From IMG/VR virus record IMGVR_UViG_3300044633_003049, positions 62,001-126,000 of that record: DNA of 64,000 bases; one strand, written 5' to 3'. Under the pieces are notes generated by a model. The model did no database searches, was not told where the DNA came from, and worked only from the letters and a program-made list of their open reading frames with translations. Both the position numbers and the translations under genes were made by a program. The stretch's first letter is position 1. Each line of letters opens with the position of its first letter. Positions 1-49,916 of the stretch are shown one piece after another.

Positions 1-2025
1 TTCCGTAGTTATGTTAATATAAGAATTTTCATGATTCACACATAATGTCGGGACTAACATCCATTCAGGTAAAATATTTTTAACAAAATTACCCTCACCA
101 TCTATCCAATTTGCATCTATTTCATAATCATTTTTTTTAATTCCAATATTTAAAAAATATTTTATTTCTTCTTTTATCGATTCAATTTCTTGTGAATTAA
201 ATATGTGACTATAAAATTCATTTTCAGCATTTGGATTATAGTCAGGTATTAACGACCAATTTATATCCTCTAATAAATTATTTTTTTTCAATAAACATAA
301 CAACGCATACCTATGTCTTTTAGGTCCTTTATTAAAACACATAAAAAATTTACCTTTTTTTTCTGTTATTAAAGAACACTCTCCCTCCATTTCTAATACT
401 CTAGTTGATGAGAATGGTAAAAAATTAATTTTATATACGTTAATATCACTATTATGTTCTTTTTTAATATCATCAATTAATGAGTTATTATTAATAAAAT
501 AAAATTGTTTTGGATTTAAATTATTTTTAATTACAAAATTATTAAGTTCTAAAAACCCGTTTTCGTCATCTGATTCGTGTTCTGTAACAAATCCCACGTA
601 AAAATTTTCACATTTTAACAAAACATTTTTTAAATTTTCATTAAAAAATTGTTCAAATTTTGCTTGTTTAAAAATTTGTTCATAATTAAATCCATGTAAT
701 GTTATGAAATAATAAAAATTTTCATCGGGTCTCTCATATACTTCATTAAATCTACATTTTTTTAATTCAAATTTATCATTACTCGATAATGTATTTTGTA
801 GATATCCAAAAAAAAGTCCTTTATCTAAATATGACCACATTAAATGATGCATATCTCCAAAATGTAAATTAGGAAAATGTTTTTTACCGTTATAATTTGT
901 ATTGTCAATGTCTAACCAATCATCATACACTAAATTTATTGTATTTTTTTTAATCATATTTTTAATCGTATTTAAAAAGTAACTTGGGATTACATCCTGA
1001 TTAATTGCATCATGTACCTCATATGTATATTCTTTAAATAATTCAATTAATTCTTTTGGTAAAAAAGGATCTTTTTCTATGATTTCTAACGCTCTTTTTT
1101 TATTTCTTTTAATCTTATCTTTAATAATATTGTTTAAATCATTTAAATTTTTATTTTTAAGATTTAATAAATTATTAACTACACCATCAGTTCTTTCCTT
1201 TAAATTTGGTTTTTTATCAAATGTATAATCAATTATTTCGTGATATAATTCAAATCCATATTCTTCTAATATATAATTTTGGTTCATATAACCTAAACAT
1301 ATAAATGGTTGTTCTAATAAAATCGCCTTAAAGGTTTTTTCTGTTACAAAAAGAAAATCATCACTAGATTCTGTTACAATTGTTAAAAATGTATTGGGTA
1401 TCAATATTTGTTTTGTCCATTCATTTAATATTTGTTTTCCGTCGTCTTCTAAATCAATATTTAACAATGTTTCGTTCCAATATTTAAATTCGTAATTAAT
1501 TTGGTAATCATCGTATTTAATCATTCTCCAAGATACTAAACCATCGTTTAATAGTTCATGTTTTGATAGGTTATCAATTAATTCACATCTATGATATCTT
1601 GACTTATTATTGTAGCATAGATAAAGATAATTAAAATTATTTCTATCTATTATATTTTCAAAATTAGATATTTGTGATTTTAAATGGTACATTGTATAGT
1701 GTAACAATGAAGTTCCCCAGGGTAATATATTTATATAATCAACTATACGTTTATTACCAAATATTGATTCCGATTTATGTATGTGATGTTGGTATTCGGC
1801 ACCACAAATAATATATAATTTAATATTCCTATCAATCAATAAATTTTTAAAAATTTTAAAGTTTTCTTCGTTATCTAACGCACGAAAAGATGCCTCAGTG
1901 ATATTAAAAAAAAATATTTTGTTAAAATTATATCTTTTAATTTCATCAATAATGTAAGATAAACCTTGTCCTACTCTTCCATCAACATGTGATATATTAT
2001 AGATTCCAACTCTTTTATCTAACAT
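1..2025 (-). CDS. Tandem two-domain GT10-like ('TEK' family) putative glycosyltransferase, 3' end beyond window
   Basis: Not in ORF track. Hand translation is open from ATG 2025 (MLDKRVGIY...) to base 1 (>=675 aa). Domain 1: CYNNKSRYHR and IVTESSDDFLFVTEKTFKAILLEQPFICLG. Domain 2 starts in frame at ATG 957 (MIKKNTINLVYDDW...) with HESDDENGF and CFNKGPKRHR, paralogous to 6451-7716. Confidence 0.75.
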   Translation of the reverse strand, partial: MLDKRVGIYNISHVDGRVGQGLSYIIDEIKRYNFNKIFFFNITEASFRALDNEENFKIFKNLLIDRNIKLYIICGAEYQHHIHKSESIFGNKRIVDYINILPWGTSLLHYTMYHLKSQISNFENIIDRNNFNYLYLCYNNKSRYHRCELIDNLSKHELLNDGLVSWRMIKYDDYQINYEFKYWNETLLNIDLEDDGKQILNEWTKQILIPNTFLTIVTESSDDFLFVTEKTFKAILLEQPFICLGYMNQNYILEEYGFELYHEIIDYTFDKKPNLKERTDGVVNNLLNLKNKNLNDLNNIIKDKIKRNKKRALEIIEKDPFLPKELIELFKEYTYEVHDAINQDVIPSYFLNTIKNMIKKNTINLVYDDWLDIDNTNYNGKKHFPNLHFGDMHHLMWSYLDKGLFFGYLQNTLSSNDKFELKKCRFNEVYERPDENFYYFITLHGFNYEQIFKQAKFEQFFNENLKNVLLKCENFYVGFVTEHESDDENGFLELNNFVIKNNLNPKQFYFINNNSLIDDIKKEHNSDINVYKINFLPFSSTRVLEMEGECSLITEKKGKFFMCFNKGPKRHRYALLCLLKKNNLLEDINWSLIPDYNPNAENEFYSHIFNSQEIESIKEEIKYFLNIGIKKNDYEIDANWIDGEGNFVKNILPEWMLVPTLCVNHENSYINITTE

Positions 2026-2752
2026 TTATATTTTTTAAAAATGGTAATATTATTTCTTTTGTAAACATTTCATGCCCATAATCATTTGGGTGAATTCCTA
2101 TATATCCATTAAAATCAGGTTTATTAAAACCTTTATCTTTACAATTAATTTTAACCCATTCATGACACCCATTTATCGGTAAGAATTTCTCAAAATTTAC
2201 CATATTAAATAAATATTCAACTTCAGGATGTTTTAATGTTGTTTCGTTTTCTTTATTTAAAATATCCATATATGTGGTCATAAAATATTTTATATTATTT
2301 TTTTCTAAATATAATTGTACTAATAAAATATTTCGTAACGTTTCTATCATTGCACCTACATATGTATGGAAATTTTGATACCACATTTTAGCTAATGGTG
2401 TGTTCCAATGTGAATTTATTATAACCCAATTTTTACGGTTTTCAACTATACTTGTTGGGTTTTCTTCCCATCCGTCTACATTCTCTAATCTTAAATTATT
2501 ATCTATAAAGAAATTGTGTCTATCAATACCACTCCACATGATACCGACAATTATTTCTTCACTTTTTTTTGTTTTTAATTGTTCATTAACATTATATAAA
2601 ACCTTTTGAGCAATAATGTTATTTCCTTGACATGGCATTGATACGTTCAATAAGTCATATTCATTTAACTCTTTAAGTTTGTATGCCCAACTCCAAGGTT
2701 GGTGTGTAAAACTACAACCACTAGCAATTAAAATTTTTTTATTTTCCTCCAT
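2015..2752 (-). CDS. SGNH/GDSL-fold protein (putative sugar O-acyl esterase/transferase)
   Basis: N-terminal LIASGCSFT, GN block, IMWS, C-terminal HPNDYGH. Confidence 0.65.
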   Translation of the reverse strand: MEENKKILIASGCSFTHQPWSWAYKLKELNEYDLLNVSMPCQGNNIIAQKVLYNVNEQLKTKKSEEIIVGIMWSGIDRHNFFIDNNLRLENVDGWEENPTSIVENRKNWVIINSHWNTPLAKMWYQNFHTYVGAMIETLRNILLVQLYLEKNNIKYFMTTYMDILNKENETTLKHPEVEYLFNMVNFEKFLPINGCHEWVKINCKDKGFNKPDFNGYIGIHPNDYGHEMFTKEIILPFLKNINVR

Positions 2753-3878
2753 AATAAACTGTGTCTTTGTATTTTCTTTCTCTCCATGGGTCTAATACAA
2801 TACTACCTTCAGGGAAAACAGTATCATTATGTGTTCCTCTATGCCCTAATAAGTATATTGCGGGTCCGTCTATTAAATCAAAATTCATTGGGTAATTTAA
2901 ATAATGAGCGATTAATCTCGTATAAGAACCATCCACATACGGAACACCAGGTTTAAAACTTTCTCCCATAATTACAAGTGGTAAATTATATTTATCCTTT
3001 AGTTCCATCATTTTATTAGCAATATTATGTGCCTGTTCCTCTCTTGATTTCATTACTGCATCAAATAAATCATATGTTAAACCATATTCTTGTGCCATAA
3101 ACCTCAACGCAATATTATCTCTCGGATGACATCCTCCACCATCTCCCATTCCAGCTTTCATATAAGCCGGTCCCATAATTCTATACGAACTTCTCTCTAA
3201 TGCACCAGTAACAATATCGGTATTCATATTACCATTTTTTTCCGCTACATCCATTATCATATTCACTAATGATAACTTAGTAGAAATAAATGTGTTATAA
3301 AATATTTTAATAGCCTCCGCATCGTCCCATGTACCTATTTCACATCTTGTTTCGGGGTGTATGAATGTTCCGTAGAACTCTGTTAGTTTTTCCGCGTCTC
3401 CCGTTCTTGACCCGTCCTCCGTACCTATTATTAACATTTCTGGTTTGACCATATCTTCTTTAACTGTACCCATTGCAATTAGGTATGGATTATATATAAA
3501 ACGATAATTTTTAACCAATGGTATAAATTCACGTCTTGTGGTGCCGGGTAAAACTGTTGATATTAAAACAACTAACTGTTCTTTTGTTGTATGTTGATTT
3601 ATCTCATTCAAAATACCCTTAACAATTGAATAGTCAAAATCTTTTGGTTCCAAATGTGATGTTGGTTGACTCCCATCGTAATCTTTGTGATGTGGGGTCG
3701 GTACCGCAATGAATATCAATTCCCTATCTCTACAAACATCTTCTAATGATGTTGTCATAGATATTGTACTATCCTTAATTTCCATCACATCGTAACCAAG
3801 AACATCGTGATTAGCACTCTGCATAACTTCAGCGGCCTCTTTTCCTAATTTACCAATTCCAATAAATCCAATTCTCAT
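2739..3878 (-). CDS. ugd: UDP-glucose/GDP-mannose 6-dehydrogenase family
   Basis: GIGKLG Rossmann motif, FIAVPTP, STVLPGTT, AIKIFYNTF, catalytic-Cys motif GGGCHPRD, SFKPG. Confidence 0.9.
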   Translation of the reverse strand: MRIGFIGIGKLGKEAAEVMQSANHDVLGYDVMEIKDSTISMTTSLEDVCRDRELIFIAVPTPHHKDYDGSQPTSHLEPKDFDYSIVKGILNEINQHTTKEQLVVLISTVLPGTTRREFIPLVKNYRFIYNPYLIAMGTVKEDMVKPEMLIIGTEDGSRTGDAEKLTEFYGTFIHPETRCEIGTWDDAEAIKIFYNTFISTKLSLVNMIMDVAEKNGNMNTDIVTGALERSSYRIMGPAYMKAGMGDGGGCHPRDNIALRFMAQEYGLTYDLFDAVMKSREEQAHNIANKMMELKDKYNLPLVIMGESFKPGVPYVDGSYTRLIAHYLNYPMNFDLIDGPAIYLLGHRGTHNDTVFPEGSIVLDPWRERKYKDTVYYGGK

Positions 3879-5164
3879 ATTAATTTCTTTTTGTTACCAT
3901 TTTTATTTATATCTTCCCAAATACCTATTAAAACTTCTTTAATTGTTTTAGATTCGTCGGTTTCACCGTAATTTTCAAAATAATAAGTTTTGAAATGGTT
4001 GTAATTAAATTCACATATCTCAAACATTTCTTCTCTCAATTTTTTTAATTCATCTAAAGATTTTAAACTAAATTTTTCTAACTCATTAACAATCATTTTA
4101 GATCTTTTATCCCTATCAGGTTCATCATCATAACTCTCATCTATCCATCTATCAAACGTTTTGAAACCGATTGATTTTAAATACTTTAACGAATACTGAT
4201 TACCGTAAACCATAAATGGATGACCTACCATAATTGGTTTCCAAATTTTTTCAGAAAAAAATAGTGTCCCGTCATCAACTAATGTTTCCGTAACTACTGA
4301 AATAAATGTTTTTTTAAAATCTTCAACAGTTATGTTAACCGCCAAATTATATTTTAATTCAGGCATCGTATCAATCGTCATTGGTGTTTCATTATCAAAA
4401 AATGATTTTATATTATCTGAAACTTCATAAGGTATTTCTGAAATTTTATCTATACTAATTAATCCTTTATATATAAGATTTTTTTCCAATAAATCAATTA
4501 TAAATCTTATTCTTTGATGTCTATATTGTCTATTATAGGATAAAAAAAGATATTTTTCATTTGTCGGTTCAAAAGATACGATTCTCCCCTTATATTTATT
4601 CCACGGCTCAAAATGTGAAACCCCTTTTGCTCCAAACCCTAAATTTCTTTCAATTACTATTTTTTCTGACAATAAATTTCCACACACATAAAAGATAGAA
4701 TTTTTTGGTAAATTTGATTCTAATCTCCATTTTTCTATTATCTCAAAATCTTCATTATTTTCCATTCCGGAATAACCTTCATATATAAAAAACATTAATA
4801 TTTTAGATTTACCATTTCTTATATCATCTATATAATTCTTTGAAATGCATGAAAACCCAATATCTAAATTATTTTCAAAAAACGTATTCGTATATATATT
4901 AATAATGTATATATGTGACGAACCATTTAATTCGTTTTTTGGTGTATATTGAATTAAATTACAAATTTTAGGTGTAGTTTGATGTCTTAAATGTTCTAAG
5001 TCAAACATTTCACCATCTTCCGTTAATACATTCCATTCCCCCAATGTATGTGGAATTGCCAATTTTTTTGATTCCTTTATATACCAAGTTTTAGAAGATC
5101 CGTTAGGTCTGTAATAATCAAAAATACTGTCCCAATCTTCTAAACTACAAATAATTTTTTCCAT
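3875..5164 (-). CDS. GT10-like 'TEK' family putative glycosyltransferase
   Basis: SYNRQYRHQR; FISVVTET...FFSEKIWKPIMVGHPFMVYG; GFKTFDRWIDESYD. Confidence 0.6.
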   Translation of the reverse strand: MEKIICSLEDWDSIFDYYRPNGSSKTWYIKESKKLAIPHTLGEWNVLTEDGEMFDLEHLRHQTTPKICNLIQYTPKNELNGSSHIYIINIYTNTFFENNLDIGFSCISKNYIDDIRNGKSKILMFFIYEGYSGMENNEDFEIIEKWRLESNLPKNSIFYVCGNLLSEKIVIERNLGFGAKGVSHFEPWNKYKGRIVSFEPTNEKYLFLSYNRQYRHQRIRFIIDLLEKNLIYKGLISIDKISEIPYEVSDNIKSFFDNETPMTIDTMPELKYNLAVNITVEDFKKTFISVVTETLVDDGTLFFSEKIWKPIMVGHPFMVYGNQYSLKYLKSIGFKTFDRWIDESYDDEPDRDKRSKMIVNELEKFSLKSLDELKKLREEMFEICEFNYNHFKTYYFENYGETDESKTIKEVLIGIWEDINKNGNKKKLI

Positions 5165-5257: not shown

Positions 5258-5890
5258 ATGGTAAAAAATTTAAACGATAATCTACCAATTGTTAGGAATT
5301 CACTTTGGGATAAACATGGACTTATTCAATTCGAAAGGAAAATGGCCGACTATTGGGAATCTGGTAAAGTAAGAGGTCCCATACATTTAAATGGTGGTAA
5401 TGAGGACGAATTAATTGAAATTTTTAAACGAATTAAAAAAACCGATTGGGTTTTTTCGACTTGGAGATCCCATTATCATGCATTATTAAAAGGTGTTCCT
5501 TCGGAATGGTTAGAACAAGAGATATTGGAAGGTCGTTCAATAACGATTATAAACAAAGAAGAGAATTTTTATAGTTCAGGAATTGTTGCCGGTATTATAC
5601 CGATAGCGGTTGGTGCGGCAATTGCAAATAAAAGAAATGGTAGTAATGACATAGTATGGTGTTTTTTAGGTGACATGACATATGAAACAGGTATTTTCAT
5701 GGAAAACCACAAGTATGCCAAAAATTTTGATTTACCTATTAAATTTGTCATCGAAGATAATGGAGTATCGACAAATACCCCAACAATTGAAACGTGGGGG
5801 GTTAAAAGTGGAGTTCCAAATGACATTATTTGGTATGACTACGAAAAGCAATGGCCTCACTATGGTACAGGTAAATGGGTTATATTTTAA
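5258..5890 (+). CDS. ThDP-dependent E1 alpha-like subunit (shortened)
   Basis: HLNGGNE, STWRSHYHAL, GIVAG, ThDP motif GDMT...G.F.E...LPIKFVIEDNG. Confidence 0.85.
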   Translation: MVKNLNDNLPIVRNSLWDKHGLIQFERKMADYWESGKVRGPIHLNGGNEDELIEIFKRIKKTDWVFSTWRSHYHALLKGVPSEWLEQEILEGRSITIINKEENFYSSGIVAGIIPIAVGAAIANKRNGSNDIVWCFLGDMTYETGIFMENHKYAKNFDLPIKFVIEDNGVSTNTPTIETWGVKSGVPNDIIWYDYEKQWPHYGTGKWVIF

Positions 5891-5904: not shown

Positions 5905-6450
5905 ATGAATACACAACAACAAACACCTTATAAAGATGCATTGACTAACTCAATGACTTATTTAGGTCAACAAAATGATACAGTTTTTATTGGTCAACAA
6001 ATTATTTGGCCTGGAAACCCAATGAGTTCTACTTTAAATAATGTTTCTAAAGAAAAAATGATTGAGGTTCCTGTAATGGAAGATTCACAAATGGGAATGT
6101 CATTAGGGATGGCGATGGTCGGTAAGTTTGTTATTACATTCTACCCTCGTTGGGACTTTTTAATATGTGCAACAAATCAATTAGTTAACCATGTTGATAA
6201 AATTGGTTTAATGAGTGGTGGTGAATGGAAACCTAACATGATTATTCGTGTGGGTAAAGGTTCAGATAATCCATTGGATCCAGGTCATCAACATAAAGGT
6301 AATTATTTTAATGAATTTAAATCGATGTGTCCCAATATTAATTTTATCGATTTAAAAGATTGGGAATCAATTGAATTTCACTATAAAAATGCGTATGAAA
6401 AGGGTGGAATTCATGTTATAGTTGAGTATCCTGAACTTTATAATTTATAA
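5905..6450 (+). CDS. ThDP-dependent E1 beta-like subunit (pyrimidine-binding domain only)
   Basis: EVPVME...GMSLGMAM, DFLICATNQLVN, GHQH; C-terminal domain absent. Confidence 0.8.
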   Translation: MNTQQQTPYKDALTNSMTYLGQQNDTVFIGQQIIWPGNPMSSTLNNVSKEKMIEVPVMEDSQMGMSLGMAMVGKFVITFYPRWDFLICATNQLVNHVDKIGLMSGGEWKPNMIIRVGKGSDNPLDPGHQHKGNYFNEFKSMCPNINFIDLKDWESIEFHYKNAYEKGGIHVIVEYPELYNL

Positions 6451-7716: not shown

Positions 7717-8450
7717 TAATGTGCTTTTATTATAAAATCATATAACATATCAGAAATTAATTTATACCCATGGATATTAGGATGTTGGGTTGGTCTATCT
7801 TTATAATTTTCACTATGTTCCCAAATATCTTCTCTGTTTGTATCGTTCAAGAAATCTCTTATGGTTTTTTTACCGAACCTCCAATAATATTTTTTATCAA
7901 TTATATCTAACCTATCATCATGTTTATTTAATTCAATTATCATACTTTCAAAAGCATCACACATTACATATTTAACTTCATAAAAATCAAACATCTTCTG
8001 TAAAAAAATAATATAGTTTTGGTTAACTATATTATAATAATTTTGATTAAATAAATTGGATACGTATAATTCTTTAAATGAACACAAAAAATTATTATAT
8101 TTTTCATTTTCACTTTGATATGACTCAACGAATTTGTGGGGATATTCTATTAAGTGTTTTATTGACCAGCTAACCCATTCGTTTTTAGGTAAAAATGGTA
8201 CCAAATCCCTTAAAGATGATGACCACATAATAACCACAATATCATTTTTTTCAATCTTACCTTCAATTAAATCGTCAACAATTTTATTAAAAATATTTAA
8301 ATTTGAATTTCCTGAAATGCCGTTATTAATGGATTTTACATTAAGTTTATCTGACACTATTTTTAGCCAAGAATGTTTTTTCCATTCATTTCTATTATTA
8401 GTGGTTCCTTGTCCCTCAGTCCAACTATCTCCATATCCATGTAACCTCAT
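7713..8450 (-). CDS. SGNH/GDSL-fold protein
   Basis: Likely start ATG 8450 (MRLHGYGDSWTEG), just after the upstream stop at 8452; GISGNSN, IMWSS, QHPNIHGY. Confidence 0.7.
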   Translation of the reverse strand: MRLHGYGDSWTEGQGTTNNRNEWKKHSWLKIVSDKLNVKSINNGISGNSNLNIFNKIVDDLIEGKIEKNDIVVIMWSSSLRDLVPFLPKNEWVSWSIKHLIEYPHKFVESYQSENEKYNNFLCSFKELYVSNLFNQNYYNIVNQNYIIFLQKMFDFYEVKYVMCDAFESMIIELNKHDDRLDIIDKKYYWRFGKKTIRDFLNDTNREDIWEHSENYKDRPTQHPNIHGYKLISDMLYDFIIKAHY

Positions 8451-42100: not shown

Positions 42101-43560
42101 CCATTACTTCCTGATGAACCTGATGTACCATCTGTTCCGTTTGAACCAGAAGTTCCTGAACTTCCATCGGTACCATTAGAACCACTAGTTCCTGAAGAAC
42201 CATCTGTTCCGTTAGACCCCGATGAACCATCCGTACCATTTGAACCTGAAGAACCATCCGTTCCGTTTGACCCACTAGAACCAGATGTACCATCAGTACC
42301 ATTTGAACCTGAAGTACCTGAAGAACCGTCGGTACCATTAGAACCTGAAGTACCTGAAGTCATTGCTAAGAATGAAACTCCGTTTATTGTTAAATCACCT
42401 TCAGTGATATTAACTGAACCTGAAAGAATATTTATTGATCCTGTAAATTGGTGTGTGTCATCGTTAGTATCTCCGAATTTAGTAGATCCTGAAGTATATA
42501 ATATAGATGAAGTAACATAATCAATATGTAATTCTTTCGCAGTTAATATACCGTTGATGTATGTATCACCGTTTACTCTGAATGTTCCATCAGATTGTAT
42601 AGACGCACTAACTGAACCGCTTACTATTTTATTTAATTCTAATCCTGTAACTCCTGAAGCTGGAATGTTATATAAACCCCCACCATCACCTGTAAATGAA
42701 CCTGATATTGTACCAGTTTTAACAGTTAAAGAGCCTGTAATTTCTACATTATTGGTTGTTGTCCATATTCCAGAACCTAAACTTGTTTCAGCAAACAATG
42801 AATCTCCTGATGTACCTGAAGAACCGTCTGTTCCGTTTGATCCTGAAGAACCATCCGTACCATTAGAACCTGAAGAACCGTCAGTACCATTAGAACCTGA
42901 AGAACCAGAACTTCCGTCTGTTCCGTTTGATCCTGAAGAACCTGAACTACCGTCTGTACCATTAGAACCTGAAGAACCGTCGGTTCCATTACTTCCTGAT
43001 GTGCCTGAAGAACCGTCAGTTCCGTTACTTCCTGATGAACCTGATGTACCATCTGTTCCGTTTGAACCTGAAGTTCCTGAAGTTGCTGCCGTATATGATG
43101 TTCCGTTTATAAATAAACTACCCGTAACATTTAAAGAACCACTTACATTAACTTGACTACCGAATGTTGCGGTTGTACCTGTTAAATTAGTAATTGTTAC
43201 ACCACTGATAGTATTACCTTCAATGTTACCAACTAAATTTAATTTGACATTACCACCCGCACCGTCATTATTTAATATGTATAATTTATTTTCACCACTA
43301 GCGTAGAATGGTGTACCGTCTAATGTTGAACCATACGTTCCCGCAGAAATCGTTGGTGCATTAGCTCCTTGATACATCTTGGACACCGCCTTAAATGCAC
43401 CTGCAACTCCTTCATCTCCAATTGCTGGTGAACCGATAAAGATAAAAGGACCTGATAAGTCATTTATCGAACCGGTTGCGATGATTAATTCACCATTTCT
43501 TGCCGTTGTATTTTTGAGGATTTCTAACGAACCCCTCCTGTGTTTAATAATTTGTGCCAT
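39178..43560 (-). CDS. Long tail fibre (1460 aa) with four Gly-X-Y repeat blocks
   Basis: N-terminal IKHRRG...GELIIAT; GSNGTDGSS repeats; FGDxxDDxHxFTGS modules; C-terminal IDGGTF. Confidence 0.8.
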   Translation of the reverse strand: MAQIIKHRRGSLEILKNTTARNGELIIATGSINDLSGPFIFIGSPAIGDEGVAGAFKAVSKMYQGANAPTISAGTYGSTLDGTPFYASGENKLYILNNDGAGGNVKLNLVGNIEGNTISGVTITNLTGTTATFGSQVNVSGSLNVTGSLFINGTSYTAATSGTSGSNGTDGTSGSSGSNGTDGSSGTSGSNGTDGSSGSNGTDGSSGSSGSNGTDGSSGSSGSNGTDGSSGSNGTDGSSGSNGTDGSSGTSGDSLFAETSLGSGIWTTTNNVEITGSLTVKTGTISGSFTGDGGGLYNIPASGVTGLELNKIVSGSVSASIQSDGTFRVNGDTYINGILTAKELHIDYVTSSILYTSGSTKFGDTNDDTHQFTGSINILSGSVNITEGDLTINGVSFLAMTSGTSGSNGTDGSSGTSGSNGTDGTSGSSGSNGTDGSSGSNGTDGSSGSNGTDGSSGTSGSNGTDGSSGTSGSNGTDGTSGSSGSNGTDGSSGTSVTVSGTNNTIGKFQTGATTTLVDSSISDDGTTVTISSDVNINGILTAREIHMDYVTSSVLFTSGSNRFGDTLDDTHQFTGSVNITGSISLNGQAIGTGKLDETAFNAYTSSVTSSFAGTASFATSASYAVYAENAVIVSGQTKTLVIGSASTTWSFNHNLGYKYPAVNVFDGSDKVVIPTEIHVIDSNNLKVYFNEAQTGTVIATIGGNGSSGTSGSNGTDGSSGSSGSNGTDGSSGTSGSNGTDGSSGSNGTDGSSGTSGSNGTDGSSGSNGTDGSSGSSGSSGSNGTDGTSGSSGSNGTDGSSGSSGSNGTDGSSGSNGTDGSSGSNGTDGSSGTSGDSLFAETSLGSGIWRTTNNVEITGSLTVKTGTISGSFTGDGGGLYNIPASGVTGLELNKIVSGSVSASIQSDGTFRVNGDTYINGILTAKELHIDYVTSSVLYTSGSTKFGDTPDDNHQFTGSVLVSGSINLVGGDLTINGTSYTAATSGTSGSNGTDGTSGSSGSNGTDGTSGSSGSNGTDGSSGSNGTDGSSGSNGTDGSSGSSGSNGTDGSSGSSGSNGTDGSSGSSGSSGSNGTDGSSGSSGSNGTDGSSGTSGSNGTDGSSGSNGTDGSSGSNGTDGSSGTSGSNGTDGSSGSNGTDGSSGTSGSNGTDGSSGTSGSNGTDGTSGSNGTDGSSGTSGSNGTDGTSGTSVSVTGTNNYIGKFDSTGATITLVDSSIVDNGTNVTVNSDLVVTGKTNIQGNTSVTGAFTVGSGSLTSLGGDLFVSGNLQVLGSSTNVSLQSNTVAIGDNIILVNAYSPFQRYAGISGYDSGSADQSGSLLWDSLNNKWLTVNGSNSSSKIVGTTAATLGSETSLTSGTFPIASADNTITDSLLTYSGTTLQFNTDKFTVESASGNTVIAGTLKVSGNGADAGTNTSTVTFKNSTDVFGEISATSSSVAVTSMLGYKTSDGTLTFTDTIDGGTF
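39998..40617 (-). repeat. Longest Gly-X-Y coding repeat (~200 aa)
   Basis: GSNGTDGSS units; coordinates approximate. Confidence 0.9.
41059..41455 (-). repeat. Gly-X-Y coding repeat
   Basis: GSNGTDGSS units; coordinates approximate. Confidence 0.9.
42075..42360 (-). repeat. Gly-X-Y coding repeat
   Basis: GSNGTDGSS units; coordinates approximate. Confidence 0.9.
42805..43083 (-). repeat. Gly-X-Y coding repeat
   Basis: GSNGTDGSS units; coordinates approximate. Confidence 0.9.
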
Positions 43561-43581
43561 CTACTTTGTGTTTGTTTTGTT

Positions 43582-43589
43582 TATAAATA
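43582..43589 (-). promoter_or_regulatory. TATTTATA putative phage promoter
   Basis: 21 nt upstream of ATG 43560. Confidence 0.5.
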
Positions 43590-43661
43590 GTGTATTTTAC
43601 TACATCCACCGAATTATTTCTATTGTTTTTTAATATATTTTTATTATTAATTTGTTTTTTT

Positions 43662-46163
43662 TTAAAATCCTCCCAAATCCATGACACTTCCAGTACCCAT
43701 ATCATATGTTATTACTCTTTGTCCTTGCATTGAAAGTGACGCGGATATCATTTGTGATTGAATTTGAGCTTGCATAATAGCTATTGCTCCTGATACTATT
43801 AATGACTCTCTTAATGGATCCGAAGCAGTTAATATTGTTGTACCATTAACTGTTAGGTCACCATTAATAACAACTGAACCTGATGTACGTAATGAACCAG
43901 TAAACAGATGTAAATCATCTGATGTATCTCCAAACTTAGTCGAACCTGATGAATAAAGAACTGAAGATGTTACATAATTAATATGTAATTCTCTCGCAGT
44001 TAATGTACCGTCAATATTAACATCAGTATTAACTCTTAACGTACCGTCAGCCATTGAAGCACTTACACTTCCACTAATGATTCTATCTAATTGTAATCCT
44101 GTAACTCCTGTAGCTGGAATGTTATATAAACCTGCACCGTCTCCTTTGAAAGATGCGGTAATAAAACCACCATTCTCAATGTATATGTTAGAACCACTTG
44201 TTAATACTAATGACGCACTTTCATTTAATAAAACATTTGCGTCATTAATACCTAATTGAGAAGATATACTTAATGAACCTGTAATTTGGATATCGTTTGT
44301 TGTTGTCCAAACACCTGGTGATGTTTCAGCAAATAATGAATCTCCTGATGTACCTGAAGTTCCGTTAGTACCATTACTTCCACTTGTACCAGAACTTCCG
44401 TCGGTACCGTTAGAACCTGAAGAACCATTTGTACCATCTACTCCTGATATACCTGAAGAACCTGAACTACCATCTGTACCATTACTACCACTTGTTCCCG
44501 AAGAACCATCGGTTCCATTACTTCCACTAGTTCCTGAAGAACCATCTGTTCCGTTGGAACCTGATGAACCAGAACTTCCATCTGTACCATTACTACCCGA
44601 TGAACCATCGGTTCCATTACTTCCTGAAGAACCTGAAGTACCGGAAGAACCATCAGTACCATTACTACCCGATGAACCATCGGTTCCATTACTTCCTGAA
44701 GAACCTGAAGTACCATCCGTACCGTTAGAACCACTTGTACCGGAACTACCATCGGTACCGTTTGAACCTGATGTTCCTGATGTCATTGCGGAGAATGAAA
44801 CTCCGTCTATCGATAAACTACCGCTTACTATGTTAATTGACCCCGAAACAAATACCGAACCTGTAAATTGATGTGTATCATCATGTGTGTCACCAAATTT
44901 GGTTGAACCTGAACTATATAATACTGATGAAGAAACTAATGTAACATTATATTCTTCCGCAGTTAAAACACCTTTAATTTTTACTGAACCCGTAATTTCT
45001 ACATTGTTGGTTGTTGTCCAAAAAGAACCACTATTCGCAAATAAAGAATCTCCTGAGGTTCCCGAACTACCATCAGTTCCATTAGAACCTGAAGTACCGG
45101 AAGAACCATCAGTACCATTACTACCTGAAGTACCATCTGTTCCATTACTTCCTGAAGAACCATCCGTACCGTTACTTCCTGAAGTACCTGAACTACCATC
45201 GGTTCCATTTGAACCACTAGTTCCTGAAGAACCGTCAGTTCCGTTAGAACCTGAACTTCCGTCTGTACCATCTACCCCTGATATACCTGAAGTACCTGAA
45301 GATCCATCGGTACCATTACTACCACTAGTTCCTGAACTACCATCGGTACCATTACTTCCACTTGTACCAGAACTTCCGTCGGTACCGTTAGAACCTGAAG
45401 TTCCGTCTGTACCATTAGAACCTGAAGTACCTGAAGAACCATCGGTTCCGTTTGAACCTGATGAACCACTTGTACCAGAACTACCATCACTACCTGAAGT
45501 ACCTGAAGTACCATCAGCACCACTTGTACCTGATGTACCTGAAGATGATGCTACAGATGTCACTAACGCATCTTTTAATGTTCTACCAACATATTGATAT
45601 GCCGTTATGTAAACATATTTTGTATTATCAGGGGCATCTGCAGTTAAAACAAACTGAAGAACACCCGTTTTATAATCAAATACAAATTTTGTAGGGTCTA
45701 ATTGATCACCGGCAGATGGTGAAGATGAGTTAGTTGAAACAAAAACTTTAACACCATAACCCGCTGGACTGTCTTCCGCGTTGGCGGTAGATAGTGAGGG
45801 GATTGAATATTTTGGTGATATGAAGTTTTTTTGTTGATTGGAATCAATTAATTGAGCATCGATACCTGCCGTAGTACCTGTAGTAAAAAACCAAACTTGG
45901 TTATTCGTACTTGATTTGGTCATCTTGTAACGATAGTAATACTTCATTACTTGTTGACCACCTGAAGAATAAATTGATAAATTGTCTCCACTTGTTCCAA
46001 AAGGAACGCTACTTACTGGTATTAAATCTTGATCTACATAAATCTCATTAGCATTAATATCCAACACCGAAGTGAAAGCTTCTTGAGCATCGGTAAAAGT
46101 TTCGTGTGTGTATCTTCTACTTTGGAGTAACCTTGGGGATTTTTTACTGTTATCTATCGACAT
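43662..46163 (-). CDS. Tail fibre-like structural protein (833 aa) with Gly-X-Y repeats
   Basis: Globular N-terminus (FDYKTGVLQF, YQYVG); two repeat blocks (~45050-45550, ~44340-44785); C-terminal DLGGF. Confidence 0.75.
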   Translation of the reverse strand: MSIDNSKKSPRLLQSRRYTHETFTDAQEAFTSVLDINANEIYVDQDLIPVSSVPFGTSGDNLSIYSSGGQQVMKYYYRYKMTKSSTNNQVWFFTTGTTAGIDAQLIDSNQQKNFISPKYSIPSLSTANAEDSPAGYGVKVFVSTNSSSPSAGDQLDPTKFVFDYKTGVLQFVLTADAPDNTKYVYITAYQYVGRTLKDALVTSVASSSGTSGTSGADGTSGTSGSDGSSGTSGSSGSNGTDGSSGTSGSNGTDGTSGSNGTDGSSGTSGSNGTDGSSGTSGSNGTDGSSGTSGISGVDGTDGSSGSNGTDGSSGTSGSNGTDGSSGTSGSNGTDGSSGSNGTDGTSGSNGTDGSSGTSGSNGTDGSSGTSGDSLFANSGSFWTTTNNVEITGSVKIKGVLTAEEYNVTLVSSSVLYSSGSTKFGDTHDDTHQFTGSVFVSGSINIVSGSLSIDGVSFSAMTSGTSGSNGTDGSSGTSGSNGTDGTSGSSGSNGTDGSSGSNGTDGSSGTSGSSGSNGTDGSSGSNGTDGSSGSSGSNGTDGSSGTSGSNGTDGSSGTSGSNGTDGSSGSSGISGVDGTNGSSGSNGTDGSSGTSGSNGTNGTSGTSGDSLFAETSPGVWTTTNDIQITGSLSISSQLGINDANVLLNESASLVLTSGSNIYIENGGFITASFKGDGAGLYNIPATGVTGLQLDRIISGSVSASMADGTLRVNTDVNIDGTLTARELHINYVTSSVLYSSGSTKFGDTSDDLHLFTGSLRTSGSVVINGDLTVNGTTILTASDPLRESLIVSGAIAIMQAQIQSQMISASLSMQGQRVITYDMGTGSVMDLGGF

Positions 46164-46169
46164 TTCTTA

Positions 46170-49100
46170 TTAACTAAAAGTTGTTGTTATTGATGTTATT
46201 GGCGTTGGGTCCCCCTTGTATCTTACAATTACATAAATATTAGTATATGTAGCGTTTAGTATCATACCATCCGCACTAATTAATGGTATTGTGTATGTAT
46301 TACTTGAAACTGAACTTGTGTTACAACGATTTACGTATATACTTGAACCAAATGGATTTGTTCCGTCAGTATTTGCAGTAATTGTTCCTAAGTTTGTTAA
46401 AGCATTTGATGGGTCAAAAAATCTTGGTGGTGTATATAAACCACTCTTTGTCGATTCAAATAAAATTAATGATGAAACAGAATTACTTGTTGTTGAGTCC
46501 CAATTTACAAGTGCCGTTCCCATGTTTAAAGTCATTGTAAGTTTTACTCCCGCGTTGGTTGTAACTTTTCTAACATAATATTTGTAATCACTTGTATCAC
46601 TTGGATTTTCTAACCAATACTTGTAAGCTCCACCAGGTTTAACTAAGAAACCAGGTTTAACTTGTAAATCGTTTGCACCTAAATTATATAAACCAAATGC
46701 AGTATCCCAAGCTGTTCCTGTGAATGATAAAATATTATCACTTAATTGTATTCTATTGTTTTCACCAAGGAATGGTTCAGAGTTAGATGCCCCACCATTT
46801 GTTGCAGTATCACCTGTTTGTGGTCTACCATAATACGCTAAACTACCACTCGCACTTGGTTGTCCAAATGTACCCGCCGTATGATAAGAAACTGTTGATG
46901 TGTTTGTTGTTGTACTTCCACCTTTATTTAATCCATTTATTTGTAATGAAAAAGATGTTGTACCTAAACCTGTTTGACTTATATTTTCATCAGACGCTGT
47001 AGGTGCAAATGAAGATGTTGTATATACTTTTACAATATCAGTTTCATAAGGAACCGTTCCTGTACTTCTAACAGTTACACCTGTAGAATCATAAACTGCG
47101 TTTGCAGTTTGTATTGTTCCTCCCGCAGTTGATACGGTTAATACTCCACCCGATTCAGTTACTAACGCATCAGAATCTGTAATTGTTGCAATACCCGTAC
47201 CAGCATAATATAAAGGATTAAACAATCCTAATACTGAACCCGATATTGTATATGTTGCCGAACTTAAATAAGGTGCTCCACTCAATGAACGAGACACTGC
47301 GGTTATTCCATTAACACTCACACCACTAAATGTAGGTGTCTGTGCCGGTATGTTTGTTGATATTGTTGTTAATGGTGCGTAAAATATTTCAGTACTACGT
47401 GTTTGTGGTGTTGTATATGTACTTGATCCACTAGCTATTGCAATAGACGACGTTATATGATAATAACCACTTCCACTAATTGCAGTTGCCCCTGCGTTAT
47501 AAATTGCCGGTGAGAAAACCGTTACATATTTACCATCTTGATATGCTGCAGGAATAACAGCAGGATTTGCCGTGTTAATCTTTGCTAATGTAACTCCGTT
47601 AGTTGTACCAGCACCTGTTTGTGTAATGAGTGCCTGTGAACTTGAAGTTGCCGTATCTGTTTTAGAACTATTATCTTTAAATTTAAAGGTGAATGAACCC
47701 GAAACTTTAAATGAAGTTGGAGTTCCACTACTTAATGTACCTAAACCGAATAATTGAGAGTCAACTGATGATGAAACTATTGTAGAACCACCGGCAACAC
47801 TCGTATACGTTTCGTAATATCCTGAATTAGTATAAATTGGAGAAATACCACTGAAGATTGTTGAACCTGTGGTTGCAAAACCTTTACTTTGTAAGTAAGT
47901 AATTGTTGGATTACTTGAGTTTAATGGTATACTACCAACCGTAACCGTTCCCGTCGCATTATTATTAGGGACTGTTGTATATGAACTATATGTTTTTGTA
48001 TTTGGTGCTGCGTCAGGTGCTGAAGATGATAATAAACCAGCAACAAATCTTAATATTTCAGAAACATCTGTATTTTCATTGAAGTTATTAAAATAAGAAC
48101 CATTTAAACTTGATTGCCATGGATTTGATGTTGGAACACCTACGTTGATGTTTTCAGCATGTATTGATTGTGATACCGATAATGCATATTTGTTACTGAC
48201 ACTGCCATCAGGTGAGTTTAATAAAACTTCACTACCTGTAATTTCTTGATTTCCTTTTAGAGTTATTGACCCTGTAACTAAAAGTGAACCTGTAAATAAA
48301 TGTGTATCATTTTGACTGTCACCGAAATTAGTCGAACCGCTCGCATATTGAACGGTCATGTTGGTAACCGACGACGATACTATTAATTCGTTAATGGTTA
48401 ATTTACCATCAATTGTTACGTCATTTTTTGTGTACCAATTTGAACCTGTTAATGCAAATAAACTATCACCAGAAGTTCCTGAAGAACCATCACTACCTGA
48501 AGTACCAATTGCCCCATCTGACCCACTCGTTCCAGACGTTCCTGATGTACCATCTGTTCCATTAGAACCACTCGTTCCTGAAGAACCATCACTACCTGAT
48601 GTTCCATCTGTTCCATTAGAACCACTCGTTCCTGAAGAACCGTCCGTACCATCTACACCAGAAATACCCGATGTACCATCACTACCTGATGTTCCACTTG
48701 AACCGTCGGTACCATTAGAACCTGAAGTGCCATCCGTACCATTAGAACCTGAAGTACCGGAACTACCATTCGTACCATTAGAACCTGATGTACCTGAAGA
48801 ACCATCCGTACCATCACTACCTGAAGTACCTGCCGTACCTGTCAAACCAGGTACACCTAAAGGAATGATTAAAAACTCATCATTATTATTTGGAGTTGTT
48901 CCACCGACTGATAATTGACTAACTGTATATTTTTCATACCCACTATCTAATGGGTCAACAACATCAATTTTTAATAATTTAAATGTTGTTGCGTCCCCTA
49001 CTTTAACTAATTTTAAAATTGTTCCAATAGTTAATCCGTCTAAATAAGATTCAAAATCTTGATTTGGTGAATATGCAACATTATCTATTGAAATACTCGT

Positions 49101-49916
49101 TGTTGATGTTAACCAAGCTGCCGAATTTAAATTGAAATATCCACTTCCTGGATCAACACTTGTGTTTGTGTTTCCACTATATCTCCAAATTGCTAAATGT
49201 CCTTCATATCCTGCATATCCACTTGTACCTGATGTACCATTTATACCACTTGTGCCTGATGTACCACTTGTTCCAACTCCACTTGTACCTGAAGTACCAT
49301 CTGTTCCACTTGTTCCTGAAGTACCATCTGTTCCGTCACTTCCATTAATTCCAGACGTACCATCAGTACCGCTTGTTCCTGATGTACCATTTATACCACT
49401 TGTGCCTGATGAACCATTACTACCTGAAGAACCATTAGACCCACTAGTACCTGATGTACCATCTGTACCATTAGAACCTGAAGTACCACTTATTCCACCT
49501 CCAGTACCACCTGTTATTGTAACTATTACATCACCATTACCACTATCGGTAACCGTAGCACCACTAAATGTAATTTTATCAACATTATTAATTGTTGTTG
49601 TTCCGTCTGTTAACGTAATTGCCGTACCCGTACCACTTGTACCTGAAGTTCCTGAAGAACCAGTACCACTAGAACCTGAAGTTCCTGATGTACCAGCAAC
49701 ACCTGAAGAACCACTTGTACCTGAAGAACCTGACAATCCACCGGTACCACCAGTACCTCCTGCCGCAATTAAAGCTGTAACACTTGTTCCGGAGATATAA
49801 AGATTGTCCGCATATACCGCATGTAATGAACCAGATGGAGAACCTAAGTTAATTGTCGACCCCGAAGGGACGTTCTCGGTATCAACTTGGGTCCAATTTA
49901 TTTTTTGTAATGCCAT
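46170..49916 (-). CDS. Large fibre/structural protein (1248 aa) with Gly-X-Y repeats and Ser/Thr-rich beta C-terminal region
   Basis: GTSGS/GTDGT repeat blocks (~48470-48840, ~49220-49490, ~49620-49760); FGDSQNDTHLFTGS module. Confidence 0.7.
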   Translation of the reverse strand: MALQKINWTQVDTENVPSGSTINLGSPSGSLHAVYADNLYISGTSVTALIAAGGTGGTGGLSGSSGTSGSSGVAGTSGTSGSSGTGSSGTSGTSGTGTAITLTDGTTTINNVDKITFSGATVTDSGNGDVIVTITGGTGGGISGTSGSNGTDGTSGTSGSNGSSGSNGSSGTSGINGTSGTSGTDGTSGINGSDGTDGTSGTSGTDGTSGTSGVGTSGTSGTSGINGTSGTSGYAGYEGHLAIWRYSGNTNTSVDPGSGYFNLNSAAWLTSTTSISIDNVAYSPNQDFESYLDGLTIGTILKLVKVGDATTFKLLKIDVVDPLDSGYEKYTVSQLSVGGTTPNNNDEFLIIPLGVPGLTGTAGTSGSDGTDGSSGTSGSNGTNGSSGTSGSNGTDGTSGSNGTDGSSGTSGSDGTSGISGVDGTDGSSGTSGSNGTDGTSGSDGSSGTSGSNGTDGTSGTSGTSGSDGAIGTSGSDGSSGTSGDSLFALTGSNWYTKNDVTIDGKLTINELIVSSSVTNMTVQYASGSTNFGDSQNDTHLFTGSLLVTGSITLKGNQEITGSEVLLNSPDGSVSNKYALSVSQSIHAENINVGVPTSNPWQSSLNGSYFNNFNENTDVSEILRFVAGLLSSSAPDAAPNTKTYSSYTTVPNNNATGTVTVGSIPLNSSNPTITYLQSKGFATTGSTIFSGISPIYTNSGYYETYTSVAGGSTIVSSSVDSQLFGLGTLSSGTPTSFKVSGSFTFKFKDNSSKTDTATSSSQALITQTGAGTTNGVTLAKINTANPAVIPAAYQDGKYVTVFSPAIYNAGATAISGSGYYHITSSIAIASGSSTYTTPQTRSTEIFYAPLTTISTNIPAQTPTFSGVSVNGITAVSRSLSGAPYLSSATYTISGSVLGLFNPLYYAGTGIATITDSDALVTESGGVLTVSTAGGTIQTANAVYDSTGVTVRSTGTVPYETDIVKVYTTSSFAPTASDENISQTGLGTTSFSLQINGLNKGGSTTTNTSTVSYHTAGTFGQPSASGSLAYYGRPQTGDTATNGGASNSEPFLGENNRIQLSDNILSFTGTAWDTAFGLYNLGANDLQVKPGFLVKPGGAYKYWLENPSDTSDYKYYVRKVTTNAGVKLTMTLNMGTALVNWDSTTSNSVSSLILFESTKSGLYTPPRFFDPSNALTNLGTITANTDGTNPFGSSIYVNRCNTSSVSSNTYTIPLISADGMILNATYTNIYVIVRYKGDPTPITSITTTFS

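Follow-up and report, generated by a model that had tools for sequence, protein, structure and literature searches.

A tail-fibre-linked island of glycan-synthesis genes, conserved in a lineage of uncultured jumbo phages and possibly serving to glycosylate the phage's own fibres

In this study we have analysed a 64,000-nucleotide stretch of DNA (the window; positions 62,001 to 126,000 of IMG/VR virus record IMGVR_UViG_3300044633_003049) in which a large island of sugar-synthesis, sugar-transfer and tailoring genes follows a block of tail-fibre genes on the same strand. The island is built around a five-gene core that is found behind fibre-like genes throughout a lineage of related phages, it has a variable periphery of sugar-tailoring genes, and its proteins have no recognisable membrane segments. 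This fibre-linked arrangement suggests that the phage sugar-coats its own fibres, and the interpretation that we favour, with middling confidence, is that the conserved core and the variable periphery together carry out cytoplasmic O-glycosylation of the virion fibres. We favour it because the linkage to fibre genes is conserved, co-transcription with those genes is probable, the enzymes are soluble and come without export machinery, several of them are tagged with lectin-like modules, and the fibres offer hydroxyl residues as acceptors. New here for this lineage are the five-gene core, its fibre linkage, the lectin-insert design of the GT7 glycosyltransferases (GTs) and the lectin-tagged radical S-adenosylmethionine (rSAM) enzymes that accompany them.

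The source of the window is an uncultured jumbo phage, since its AAA ATPase is 43-46 % identical to jumbo-phage proteins (including those of PA5oct, XacN1 and a 735 kb metagenomic phage), the region is present in identical copies on IMG/VR contigs of 89-212 kb and on an NCBI metagenome contig of 185 kb, and no DNA-level match was returned when 39 kb of the window were compared by Megablast with 50,697 GenBank phages. Homologues of the island's LamG-bearing GT7 enzymes (GT7-LamG) fall into more than 2000 protein clusters and were confirmed in 517 IMG/VR stretches from lakes and seas, on contigs of up to 335 kb; contigs of the window's own lineage measure 200-335 kb, and a tblastn search with GT7-LamG against the GenBank phage records found nothing. 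Conservation was counted over 79 non-identical related IMG/VR loci, all from one lineage, so that their shared synteny is not independent evidence. Each member of the core is present in 72-79 of these loci (methyltransferase 75, GT2-like transferase 78, both GT7 enzymes 79, rSAM family 72), at identities of about 50-70 % (about 70 % for the methyltransferase). The periphery is patchy by the same count: a family of GT-B-like proteins that we call A3 occurs in 36 loci, a thiamine pyrophosphate (TPP) enzyme subunit in 19, the sugar dehydrogenase in four and the 2-oxoglutarate (2OG) oxygenase in none.

For the linkage itself we used the 40 non-redundant loci whose upstream sequence extends for 8 kb or more, and counted as fibre-like any Ser/Thr/Gly-rich open reading frame (ORF) of at least 400 amino acids (aa). 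The core lies downstream of a same-strand fibre-like ORF in 38 of these 40 informative loci, at a median distance of 3.4 kb, and in 15 of the 38 the upstream ORF carries collagen-type runs. The order of fibre and core holds down to 40-42 % identity (L085, binned with a Flavobacteriaceae metagenome-assembled genome, MAG), and the core cassette is missing from two GT7-LamG loci at a greater distance (L090 and L091, ~30 % identity). Viral GT genes are clustered here with genes for virion surface proteins, which is the arrangement of a virion glycosylation system, and the linkage proposed in an earlier inspection of the letters alone (the sequence-only reading) extends to the relatives. Contigs of the lineage have also been binned into giant-virus (GVMAG), Pelagibacterales and Flavobacteriaceae/Flavobacteriales MAGs (L034, L084 and L085-L087); these assignments are probably binning artefacts from low G+C, and they may hint at the host, for which Flavobacteriia and SAR11/LD12 are the candidates.

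The centre of the core is formed by two tandem β4-galactosyltransferase-like GT7 enzymes with a ConA/LamG-type insert (21181-22599 and 22596-24047, on the minus strand, as is every gene below unless the plus strand is stated), which match Glyco_transf_7N, Glyco_transf_7C and Laminin_G_3. Both ORFs exceed the curated cut-offs, with 56.5 and 68.2 bits for Glyco_transf_7N (cut-off 27) and 68.5 and 70.5 bits for Glyco_transf_7C (cut-off 23), so the earlier assignment to GT7 stands. The family profile finds β4GalT7/β4GalT1 in the PDB at E 7e-35 over the first ~157 residues, a catalytic core in which identity to these enzymes is 31-34 %, and a structural model with a predicted local distance difference test (pLDDT) score of 82.7 aligns in Foldseek with 4lw3 and 6fwt at E 2-3e-13 (root-mean-square deviation 2.3-3.3 Å, ~157 columns). 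Across 23 diverse sequences D76, D78, W137, W139, G140, E142, D143 and H421 are invariant, corresponding to the DxD motif, WGWGYED and a C-terminal His; a regular-expression search did not find the exact WGWG motif in the second GT7 paralog. By motif and fold, the GT7 enzymes look catalytically intact. The middle domain of the model matches ConA-like, pentraxin and carbohydrate-binding folds in Foldseek and, because the C-terminal segment that follows it resumes the GT7 pattern, the lectin-like domain sits, in the model, inside the catalytic fold as an insertion.

The same kind of module recurs among the rSAM enzymes that lie next to the GT7 pair. These are a twitch-domain rSAM enzyme (16165-17613; NF033640 E 8e-89) and a 933-aa protein in which lectin-like N-terminal modules are fused to a twitch rSAM domain (18383-21184; NF033640 E 4e-91, residues 477-923). 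Their scores of 298.5 and 306.1 bits place both in the family (cut-off 170), and their cluster motifs CNFACSYC and CNFKCAYC provide CxxxCxxC at residue 136 and residue 593, respectively. Between them lies a 245-aa lectin-like (LamG/ConA-type) protein (17662-18399), an apparent rSAM partner that is homologous to residues 262-404 of the fusion protein, and hhalign relates its family to the LamG insert of GT7 with a probability of 84 % (E 7.5e-6, 175 columns). By these profile comparisons one kind of lectin-like module is common to the GT7 transferases and the rSAM enzymes, the latter having it either fused or as the adjacent 245-aa protein; this suggests that both types of enzyme act on a shared, large and repetitive macromolecular substrate. 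The rSAM enzyme at 16165-17613 is itself closely conserved, the best 120 of more than 7000 homologues being 80-95 % identical to it and the neighbouring GT7s being 55-60 % identical to theirs. The homologue search yielded thousands of near-identical environmental proteins under no name more specific than the generic 'organic radical activating enzyme', and our literature search on twitch rSAM enzymes in phages yielded only a report on marine T4-like genomes that contain as many as 12 rSAM genes. Some relatives have five to seven twitch rSAM paralogs in tandem directly downstream of the GT7 pair (L020:12804-21408, L027:12819-19593 and L030:12807-21315).

The two remaining core genes are a GT-A (GT2_4-like) glycosyltransferase (24261-25118; Glyco_tranf_2_4, best E 1e-6), for which 14 of 14 family members match the Pfam family and D-x-D-E and HHFKWD are invariant, and an S-adenosylmethionine (SAM)-dependent methyltransferase (25118-25843; Methyltransf_24 E 7e-12), which agrees with the methyltransferase proposed from the letters. 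Sequence searches of the PDB with the GT2-like, A3 and 245-aa families gave no usable match. Outside the phages, a stand-alone 259-aa GT7-type transferase that is ~41 % identical to the phage catalytic domain occurs in SAR11 (L120:9974-10750, from a Pelagibacteraceae single-cell genome), with similar ones at L122, L125, L126, L130 and L134; its neighbours are histidine-biosynthesis and TRAP-transporter genes, not a surface-glycan locus.

The island extends well beyond the 26 kb originally given for it, whose left boundary reflects only where the window ends: bases 2-2025 belong to a 792-aa gene that runs across the edge, and the island continues in the same genome (100 % identical overlap; L148/L150) for ~15 kb past the left edge, giving a total of ~40 kb and ~45 ORFs. 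We scanned 30 window ORFs and 20 extension ORFs for stretches with a mean hydropathy above 1.6 over 19 residues, and none contained a membrane-helix-like segment; the island therefore holds no flippase, polymerase, initiating transferase or ligase. Pfam agrees, as no family of initiating phosphoglycosyl transferases, flippases/ABC transporters, polymerases or ligases was matched in the island, which does not have the make-up of a Wzx/Wzy- or ABC-type cluster. This result weakens the case for a self-sufficient lipopolysaccharide (LPS) or capsule pathway.

The transcription context also connects the island with the fibres. On its minus strand the window has 20 copies of the motif TATTTAT, ~15 of which, between 35 and 64 kb, sit 15-80 nucleotides upstream of start codons. 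The motif precedes all six fibre genes (in 35306-35432, 39094-39177, 43561-43661, 49917-50274 and other upstream regions), several of which are additionally preceded by a GC hairpin and T-run, and we regard it as a candidate late promoter paired with terminators. The intergenic region 35306-35432 (minus strand), upstream of the fibre gene at 31469-35305, has such a hairpin-plus-T-run terminator together with two TATTTAT motifs, to which we ascribe a putative promoter role. From the start of this fibre gene (35305) down to 7713 there is no gap longer than 50 nucleotides, and no start codon between 31.4 and 7.7 kb has an upstream TATTTAT; hairpin terminators are likewise missing ahead of the island genes. 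The gene at 31469-35305 may accordingly be the first of a putative long transcription unit, a layout that is compatible with read-through from its promoter and hence with late co-expression of island and fibres.

The six large fibre-type genes recognised in the sequence-only reading are indeed present between 31.5 and 49.9 kb, as four collagen-repeat tail fibres and two Pro-Thr (PT)-linker proteins. The collagen-like tail fibre nearest to the island (31469-35305; Collagen E 2e-32, PHROG tail fiber E 2.5e-43) ends in a C-terminal intramolecular chaperone (Peptidase_S74 E 1.4e-9, residues 1189-1240, 38.6 bits against a cut-off of 22), which by sequence makes it a chaperone-type tail fibre, and tblastn relates parts of it to genes annotated as tail fibres in cyanophages and jumbo phages. 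Three further collagen-like tail fibres (39178-43560, 43662-46163 and 46170-49916; Collagen E 2e-72, 2e-45 and 2e-27) have in common a module with SGST-x-FGD and H-x-FTGS. All four match PHROG 'tail fiber' or 'collagen like minor tail' families (E 1e-24 to 1e-68) and Pfam Collagen PF01391 (E 2e-27 to 2e-72, in 5-11 stretches per protein), and their GXY runs, 255-522 residues per fibre, have the periodicity of collagen repeats. One PT-linker protein (35433-37373) has four PT runs and a C-terminal region with six Asp-boxes (BNR-type, S-x-D-G-x-x-W); it has zero Pfam matches, its Asp-boxes suggest a BNR/sialidase-type β-propeller, and it is possibly a glycan-binding or glycan-cleaving receptor-binding protein. 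The other (37399-39093) has two Laminin_G_3 domains (Pfam E 5e-18, PHROG 8510 E 6e-28), and both carry TPTPT linkers.

The claim that the low-complexity parts of the fibres are rich in potential acceptor residues was also upheld. In the 449 G-X-Y triplets of the four collagen fibres, X is Ser in 49 % and Thr in 46 %, without Pro, and Y is Ser in 51 %, Asn in 28 % and Asp in 20 %; with Ser or Thr at X in 95 % of triplets, the repeats offer a hydroxyl-only surface. A phage collagen-like protein taken for comparison has GIQ, GEQ and GPQ triplets instead. Whether the Pro-free repeats would form a stable triple helix is doubtful from their composition. The four fibres also contain 135 NG[ST] sites, which are the junctions of GSN with GTD or GTN triplets and are encoded by diverged DNA repeats of 27 and 36 nucleotides.

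From these observations on gene families, folds, motifs, missing membrane proteins and conserved linkage we infer the following timing, acceptor, linkage type and benefit. Late in infection, the island enzymes would convert host UDP-sugars to unusual sugars, and O-linked glycans would be built directly on Ser and Thr of newly made fibres in the cytoplasm. The lectin-like modules would hold the enzymes on the repetitive substrate once it is glycosylated, by analogy with the lectin domain of GalNAc-transferases; the glycans would leave the cell on the virion at lysis, and the variable periphery would make the glycan coat differ among related phages. In a fuller version, which we offer tentatively and consider rather unlikely as a whole, the core would be a dedicated fibre-glycosylating machine, dense O-glycans would replace hydroxyproline in stabilising the Pro-free (Gly-Ser/Thr-Ser/Asn/Asp)n helices, editing of the protein-bound glycan would fall to the rSAM enzymes, and the periphery would give each phage a 'serotype' coat.

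Several points weigh against O-glycosylation of the fibres. The phage is uncultured and known here from genes alone, and the gene order of a single lineage may reflect descent and not function. One relative (L018/L019) lacks a fibre gene within 10 kb. The sequence-only reading had tied the island to collagen-like and PT stalks; over 31 loci the core is kept whether the neighbouring fibres are collagen-positive (11) or collagen-negative (20), other relatives' fibres use non-collagen Ser-rich repeats, and in Fisher tests of accessory genes against collagen-type fibres in the same 31 loci nothing survived correction for multiple testing or relatedness. The N-G-T/N-G-S sequons once taken for glycosylation sites turn out to be a by-product of GSN-GTD collagen triplets: in the relatives GTS (1525) and GSS (1306) make up 86 % of triplets, as opposed to 77 GSN, 42 GTN and 39 GTD, so that NG[ST]-forming triplets are ~5 % of the total and the sequon is not conserved. 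Family matches of the island proteins also included no oligosaccharyltransferase (PglB/AglB) and no cytoplasmic N-glycosyltransferase (NGT; GT41) and, for both reasons, N-glycosylation at N-x-S/T is unsupported. The conserved link is to fibres, and neither to collagen itself nor to the N-G-T sequon. Furthermore, a generic scan for sigma-70 promoters and terminators did not rise above shuffled background; hypervariability of sugar islands is a hallmark of loci for cell-surface polysaccharides; peripheral GTs of undecaprenyl-linked host pathways are likewise without membrane segments, which leaves room for remodelling of host glycans; and LamG domains also occur in receptor-binding proteins, so that those on the enzymes could bind host glycans.

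The main rival explanation, which we regard as unlikely, draws on several of these points and holds that the enzymes remodel the host surface, acting on lipid-linked LPS, capsule or S-layer intermediates at the inner face of the membrane and relying on the host's flippase and ligase; the phage would gain a block on superinfection, progeny that do not stick to the debris of lysed cells, or destruction of the receptor. The gene content does resemble O-antigen and capsule loci (a dehydrogenase and dehydratases, aminotransferases, numerous GTs, and tailoring enzymes for acyl, methyl and carbamoyl groups), the periphery is hypervariable from one relative to the next in the manner of serotype loci, many bacterial genomes encode GT7 catalytic domains, and large 'LPS' gene clusters are known from T4-like cyanophages such as P-SSM2. 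However, such a pathway fits poorly with ~45 island ORFs that include no initiating transferase, flippase, polymerase, ligase or membrane protein, and with an island that is joined to the fibre block and not to early genes; lectin-like modules on GT and rSAM enzymes would be unusual for lipid-linked pathways, the stand-alone SAR11 GT7 lies beside housekeeping genes and lends LPS no support, and no integrase or lysogeny gene was seen within the window. A variant of the favoured reading, with another virion acceptor (the capsid, decoration proteins or the tail tube, for example) and the fibres adjacent only by chance, is in our view improbable. In its favour, the core is independent of the fibre repeat type, and the mycobacteriophage acceptors, as far as they are summarised in PMC12619734, are the C-termini of capsid and tail-tube proteins; but the fibre adjacency is conserved in nearly all of the informative loci, and no capsid or tail-tube gene was found in the window.

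A soluble small product derived from carbohydrate (aminoglycoside- or aminocyclitol-like, or a decorated oligosaccharide), used inside the cell or released at lysis, for example against competing phages or host defences, is brought to mind by an enzyme mix that recalls aminoglycoside pathways: twitch rSAM enzymes, the class that contains BtrN, together with an amidinotransferase-like ORF, DegT, a NodU/CmcH carbamoyltransferase, a methyltransferase and GTs, and, in relatives, the arrays of rSAM paralogs. We consider it highly improbable, given that the amidinotransferase assignment is sub-threshold, that no cyclitol synthase or resistance gene was seen, and that the lectin-like modules on core enzymes point to a polymeric substrate; the constant position behind the fibre genes would also be left unexplained. 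Smaller still is the likelihood that we attach to DNA hypermodification, in which the GTs would decorate hydroxymethylated bases of the phage to evade restriction. It can appeal to the occurrence of rSAM and pyridoxal phosphate (PLP) enzymes in base-hypermodification clusters and to the Dam-type methyltransferase in the window (52599-53441). Phage GTs do commonly glycosylate DNA with diverse glycans (PMC12619734). Nevertheless, family matches across window and extension put neither a pyrimidine hydroxymethylase or kinase nor a domain for DNA binding in the island or close to it; known DNA glycosyltransferases do not resemble β4GalT-type enzymes that have lectin inserts; the island sits with structural and not replication genes; and at least eight GT domains plus enzymes of sulfation and carbamoylation far exceed what known DNA glycans require.

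Within the window the enzyme island comprises 26 ORFs at a coding density of 99 %, and most of them (23), as had been stated, are on the fibre strand. The count of about 25 sugar genes was too high: Pfam and NCBIfam profiles support twelve ORFs (the UDP-glucose dehydrogenase, two TPP E1-like subunits, the 2OG oxygenase, the epimerase, a short DegT, the two twitch rSAM enzymes, the two GT7s, the GT2_4-like transferase and Methyltransf_24), modelling adds five GT-B-fold domains, and the remainder are weak or unassigned; Pfam at E values up to 10 gave nothing credible for ten unannotated ORFs. The five A3 domains are two in tandem in the first 674 codons of the 792-aa gene (2-2025; frame open throughout, A3 family motif) and one each at 3875-5164 (BLASTP to 10471-11760 E 3e-18; no Pfam match, predicted GT-B fold via the family model), 6451-7716 (plus strand; BLASTP E 9e-10 to 3875-5164 and 1e-7 to 10471-11760) and 10471-11760 (AlphaFold model, pLDDT 86.4). 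Pfam matched none of 20 A3 members even at E 0.1, and the family profile matched nothing in the PDB. In Foldseek the model of 10471-11760 aligns with OtsA, the H. pylori alpha-1,3-fucosyltransferase, AviGT4 and SdgB at E 7e-5 to 1e-3, the fucosyltransferase (2nzw) coming second (E 6.8e-5) amid unrelated GT-B families, with TM scores of 0.33-0.43. It is reasonable, from the modelled fold, to consider the A3 family glycosyltransferase-like. The label 'GT10/11-like' finds no backing in sequence, as neither this family nor the 366-aa ORF at 14290-15390 matched Glyco_transf_10, Glyco_transf_11 or a solved fucosyltransferase; the A3 fold is only weakly compatible with it. The ORF at 14290-15390 has no Pfam or NCBIfam match, and its homologues in seven related loci have a median identity of 44 %.

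Sugar-nucleotide and tailoring functions account for much of the rest. The UDP-glucose/GDP-mannose dehydrogenase (2739-3878) matches UDPG_MGDP_dh at E 3e-17 and UDPG_MGDP_dh_N at E 6e-17. On the plus strand lie two small TPP-enzyme subunits, one E1_dh-like (5258-5890; Pfam E 4.5e-16, ~59 % identical in 19 related loci) and one like the transketolase Pyr domain (5905-6450; Transket_pyr E 1e-4, below cut-off). A 2OG-Fe(II) oxygenase of the prolyl-4-hydroxylase-type superfamily (8452-9063) matches 2OG-FeII_Oxy_4 at E 4.5e-10 and Oxy_3 at E 1.2e-8, and an NAD-dependent sugar epimerase/dehydratase (11788-12699) matches Pfam Epimerase at E 1.3e-22. The ORF at 12701-13711 is possibly an amidinotransferase or other pentein-fold enzyme (sub-threshold arginine-deiminase matches, E 0.07-0.09, and a C-terminal GGSFHC). 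DegT was predicted from the letters and its profile does match at 13698-14300 (DegT_DnrJ_EryC1 E 7e-16, NCBIfam LegC family E 3e-9), but this DegT/LegC-type aminotransferase-like copy is short (200 aa) and the full-length DegT lies beyond the left edge. The short form is conserved, with a 226-aa counterpart at L006:16159-16839; both keep the S-F-x-x-x-K PLP-lysine region and lack the terminal portions (N and C) that the normal enzymes of 370 aa have. SGNH enzymes were likewise foreseen and four SGNH-like ORFs are present, but on weak matches or motif only: a DUF6071/SGNH-like hydrolase or acyltransferase (2015-2752; DUF6071 E 4e-6, 27 bits, equal to the cut-off, with GCSF and DxxH-type motifs), a weak GDSL/SGNH-like ORF with a TTG start (7713-8516; Lipase_GDSL_2 E 4e-4, 21 bits against a cut-off of 32.9), and two without Pfam match that are SGNH-like by motif (9521-10471, GLGDSFTQG; 15394-16158, GICGDSF). 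A 146-aa ORF (9074-9514) has a sub-threshold ZMYND8_CC coiled-coil match only (E 1.4e-3, 19.2 bits, cut-off 27) and homologues in 12 related loci at a median identity of 68 %. Near the core, a conserved 76-aa ORF (24034-24264) between the GT2-like and GT7 genes has same-position counterparts of 67-77 aa in relatives, and a 235-aa protein with a DxD motif (25847-26554), which has no family match and keeps its position in 25 loci, is a possible fourth GT-A. Beyond the left edge (L150:1678-20749) are the tandem GT-B-like protein in its complete 792-aa form, a further three SGNH-like ORFs, a DUF5672 protein, the full-length DegT, four epimerase/dehydratases, the NodU/CmcH-type carbamoyltransferase, an adenosine phosphosulfate (APS) kinase and an ORF of 199 aa whose N-terminus has a sulfotransferase-like motif; behind them come a SET-domain protein, 2OG oxygenases and one more rSAM gene.

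The enzymes had been placed directly downstream of the fibres. They are downstream and on the same strand, but the genes at 26569-31469, which by sequence are structural (LamG-type, Ser/Thr-rich and Lys-poor) and not enzymatic, intervene. Three receptor-binding-type proteins with a common N-terminal anchor (26569-28230, 28237-28944 and 28950-29813), two of them with Laminin_G_3 (E 2e-11 and 1e-20), are 39-65 % identical over their N-terminal 45-90 residues and then diverge, a pattern typical of alternative receptor-binding proteins that dock at one site; the block 26569-29813 matches PHROG 8510 'virion structural protein' at E 3.5e-23. They are followed by an 88-aa ORF and three tandem paralogs of 146, 155 and 156 aa (29816-31469; paralogs 30092-31469), which are Ser/Thr-rich and nearly Lys-free (0-2 Lys in each paralog), have no family match in Pfam or PHROG, and are probably fibre-associated; a homologue of the paralogs was found in one other locus only. 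The start of the enzymes at 26554 is a sharp break in composition, with Ser+Thr falling from 0.20-0.26 upstream to ~0.10 in the enzymes and Lys going from 0-14 per protein to 11-89.

Throughout the window, G+C is ~30 % and the minus strand carries almost every gene. The flank beyond the fibres (50-64 kb) encodes a thioredoxin, the AAA ATPase, a NusG-like protein, the Dam-type methyltransferase, an amidase and a sigma-70-type factor; PHROG searches with ten flanking ORFs matched AAA-ATPase families and nothing else. A small glutaredoxin/NrdH-like ORF (CxxC motif) and the thioredoxin gene lie directly upstream of the first fibre gene (49917-50580). A 455-aa ORF (59643-61010) has a weak TacA1 antitoxin-like segment, and free-standing antitoxin genes are a reported feature of moraphages (PMC12619734).

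If the phage does glycosylate its own fibres, then phages can run a glycan factory of giant-virus scale for their own particle (~45 genes with at least eight transferase domains), and such a factory would be common in aquatic jumbo phages, given its presence on over 500 contigs in IMG/VR. Its enzymes would be of an undescribed design, in which a lectin domain is inserted into a β4GalT fold and the same module tags the rSAM enzymes, there would be a test case for the stabilisation of Pro-free collagen helices by glycosylation, and the four core GT orthogroups of the moraphages would gain a function. If remodelling of the host surface is true instead, the conserved fusion to the fibre block and the missing export genes would still have to be explained. 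To our knowledge, the documented cases of phage-encoded virion glycosylation are so far confined to a few mycobacteriophages that have one or a few transferases; large-scale virion glycosylation is documented only for eukaryotic giant viruses.

Comparable arrangements exist outside viruses. BclA of Bacillus anthracis is a Pro-poor or Thr-rich collagen-like stalk that is O-glycosylated in the cytoplasm with methylated, aminated deoxysugars from a dedicated operon, so that, as in the phage, a collagen-like stalk goes together with a set of sugar genes; however, BclA has GPT repeats with Thr at Y, whereas the phage has Ser/Thr at X and Ser/Asn/Asp at Y, and the enzyme families differ. In flagellin O-glycosylation of Campylobacter and Helicobacter, Ser and Thr are modified before filament assembly by soluble enzymes without a lipid carrier. 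Those islands resemble the present one in being large, hypervariable and adjacent to a structural gene, in their Polysacc_synt_2-type dehydratase and DegT aminotransferase and in the lack of a lipid carrier, but their nonulosonic-acid synthase and Maf-type transferase were not detected in the phage island. GT27 GalNAc-transferases also combine a GT-A catalytic domain with a lectin-type domain that could read a glycosylated repetitive substrate, although the phage module would be a ConA/LamG fold inside the catalytic domain and not a C-terminal ricin-type domain; unlike GT27 and β4GalT7/β4GalT1, the phage proteins are soluble and phage-encoded. The 'LPS' clusters of P-SSM2-type cyanophages are similarly large and hypervariable sugar-gene clusters of marine myoviruses, but they belong to a different phage lineage, and GT7-LamG is absent from the GenBank phage records searched here.

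Among viruses, virion glycosylation is cited in PMC12619734 for mycobacteriophages of the Che8, Corndog and Myrna type (Freeman et al. 2023), and the F1-cluster mycobacteriophage Maravista has two putative GTs (PMC11256854). There too, as far as that citation goes, phage-encoded soluble GTs beside structural genes carry out cytoplasmic O-glycosylation of virion proteins, which shields the particle; they are few in number, whereas the island described here, known from genes alone, has ~40 kb with sugar-nucleotide chemistry, lectin-insert GT7s and rSAM enzymes and stands behind tail fibres. Giant viruses have fibril glycosylation clusters and modify collagen, as reviewed in PMC9614988; Mimivirus has a 9-12-gene fibril glycosylation cluster and the collagen hydroxylase/glucosyltransferase L230 (PMC9614988). 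Its sugar-nucleotide pathway (aminotransferase, dehydratase), GTs and methyltransferase clustered with a fibril protein, its collagen-like proteins and the variation in content by clade are all reminiscent of the phage, but Mimivirus is a eukaryotic giant virus with hydroxylysine-modified collagen, the phage repeats are without Lys or Pro, and the likeness between the clusters is one of content. Finally, the 'moraphages' described in 2025 are aquatic jumbo phages of up to ~300 kb with predicted Bacteroidota hosts and four core orthogroups of putative GTs, for which a DNA, host or virion target was left open (PMC12619734). The fibre linkage, lectin inserts and rSAM partners are not described there, but the contig sizes of the window lineage, its three to four conserved GT genes and the binning of one relative with Flavobacteriaceae are similar, and the two lineages may be the same or related. 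Should O-glycosylation of the fibres prove to be the function of the island, the system would be a variation on known virion glycosylation.

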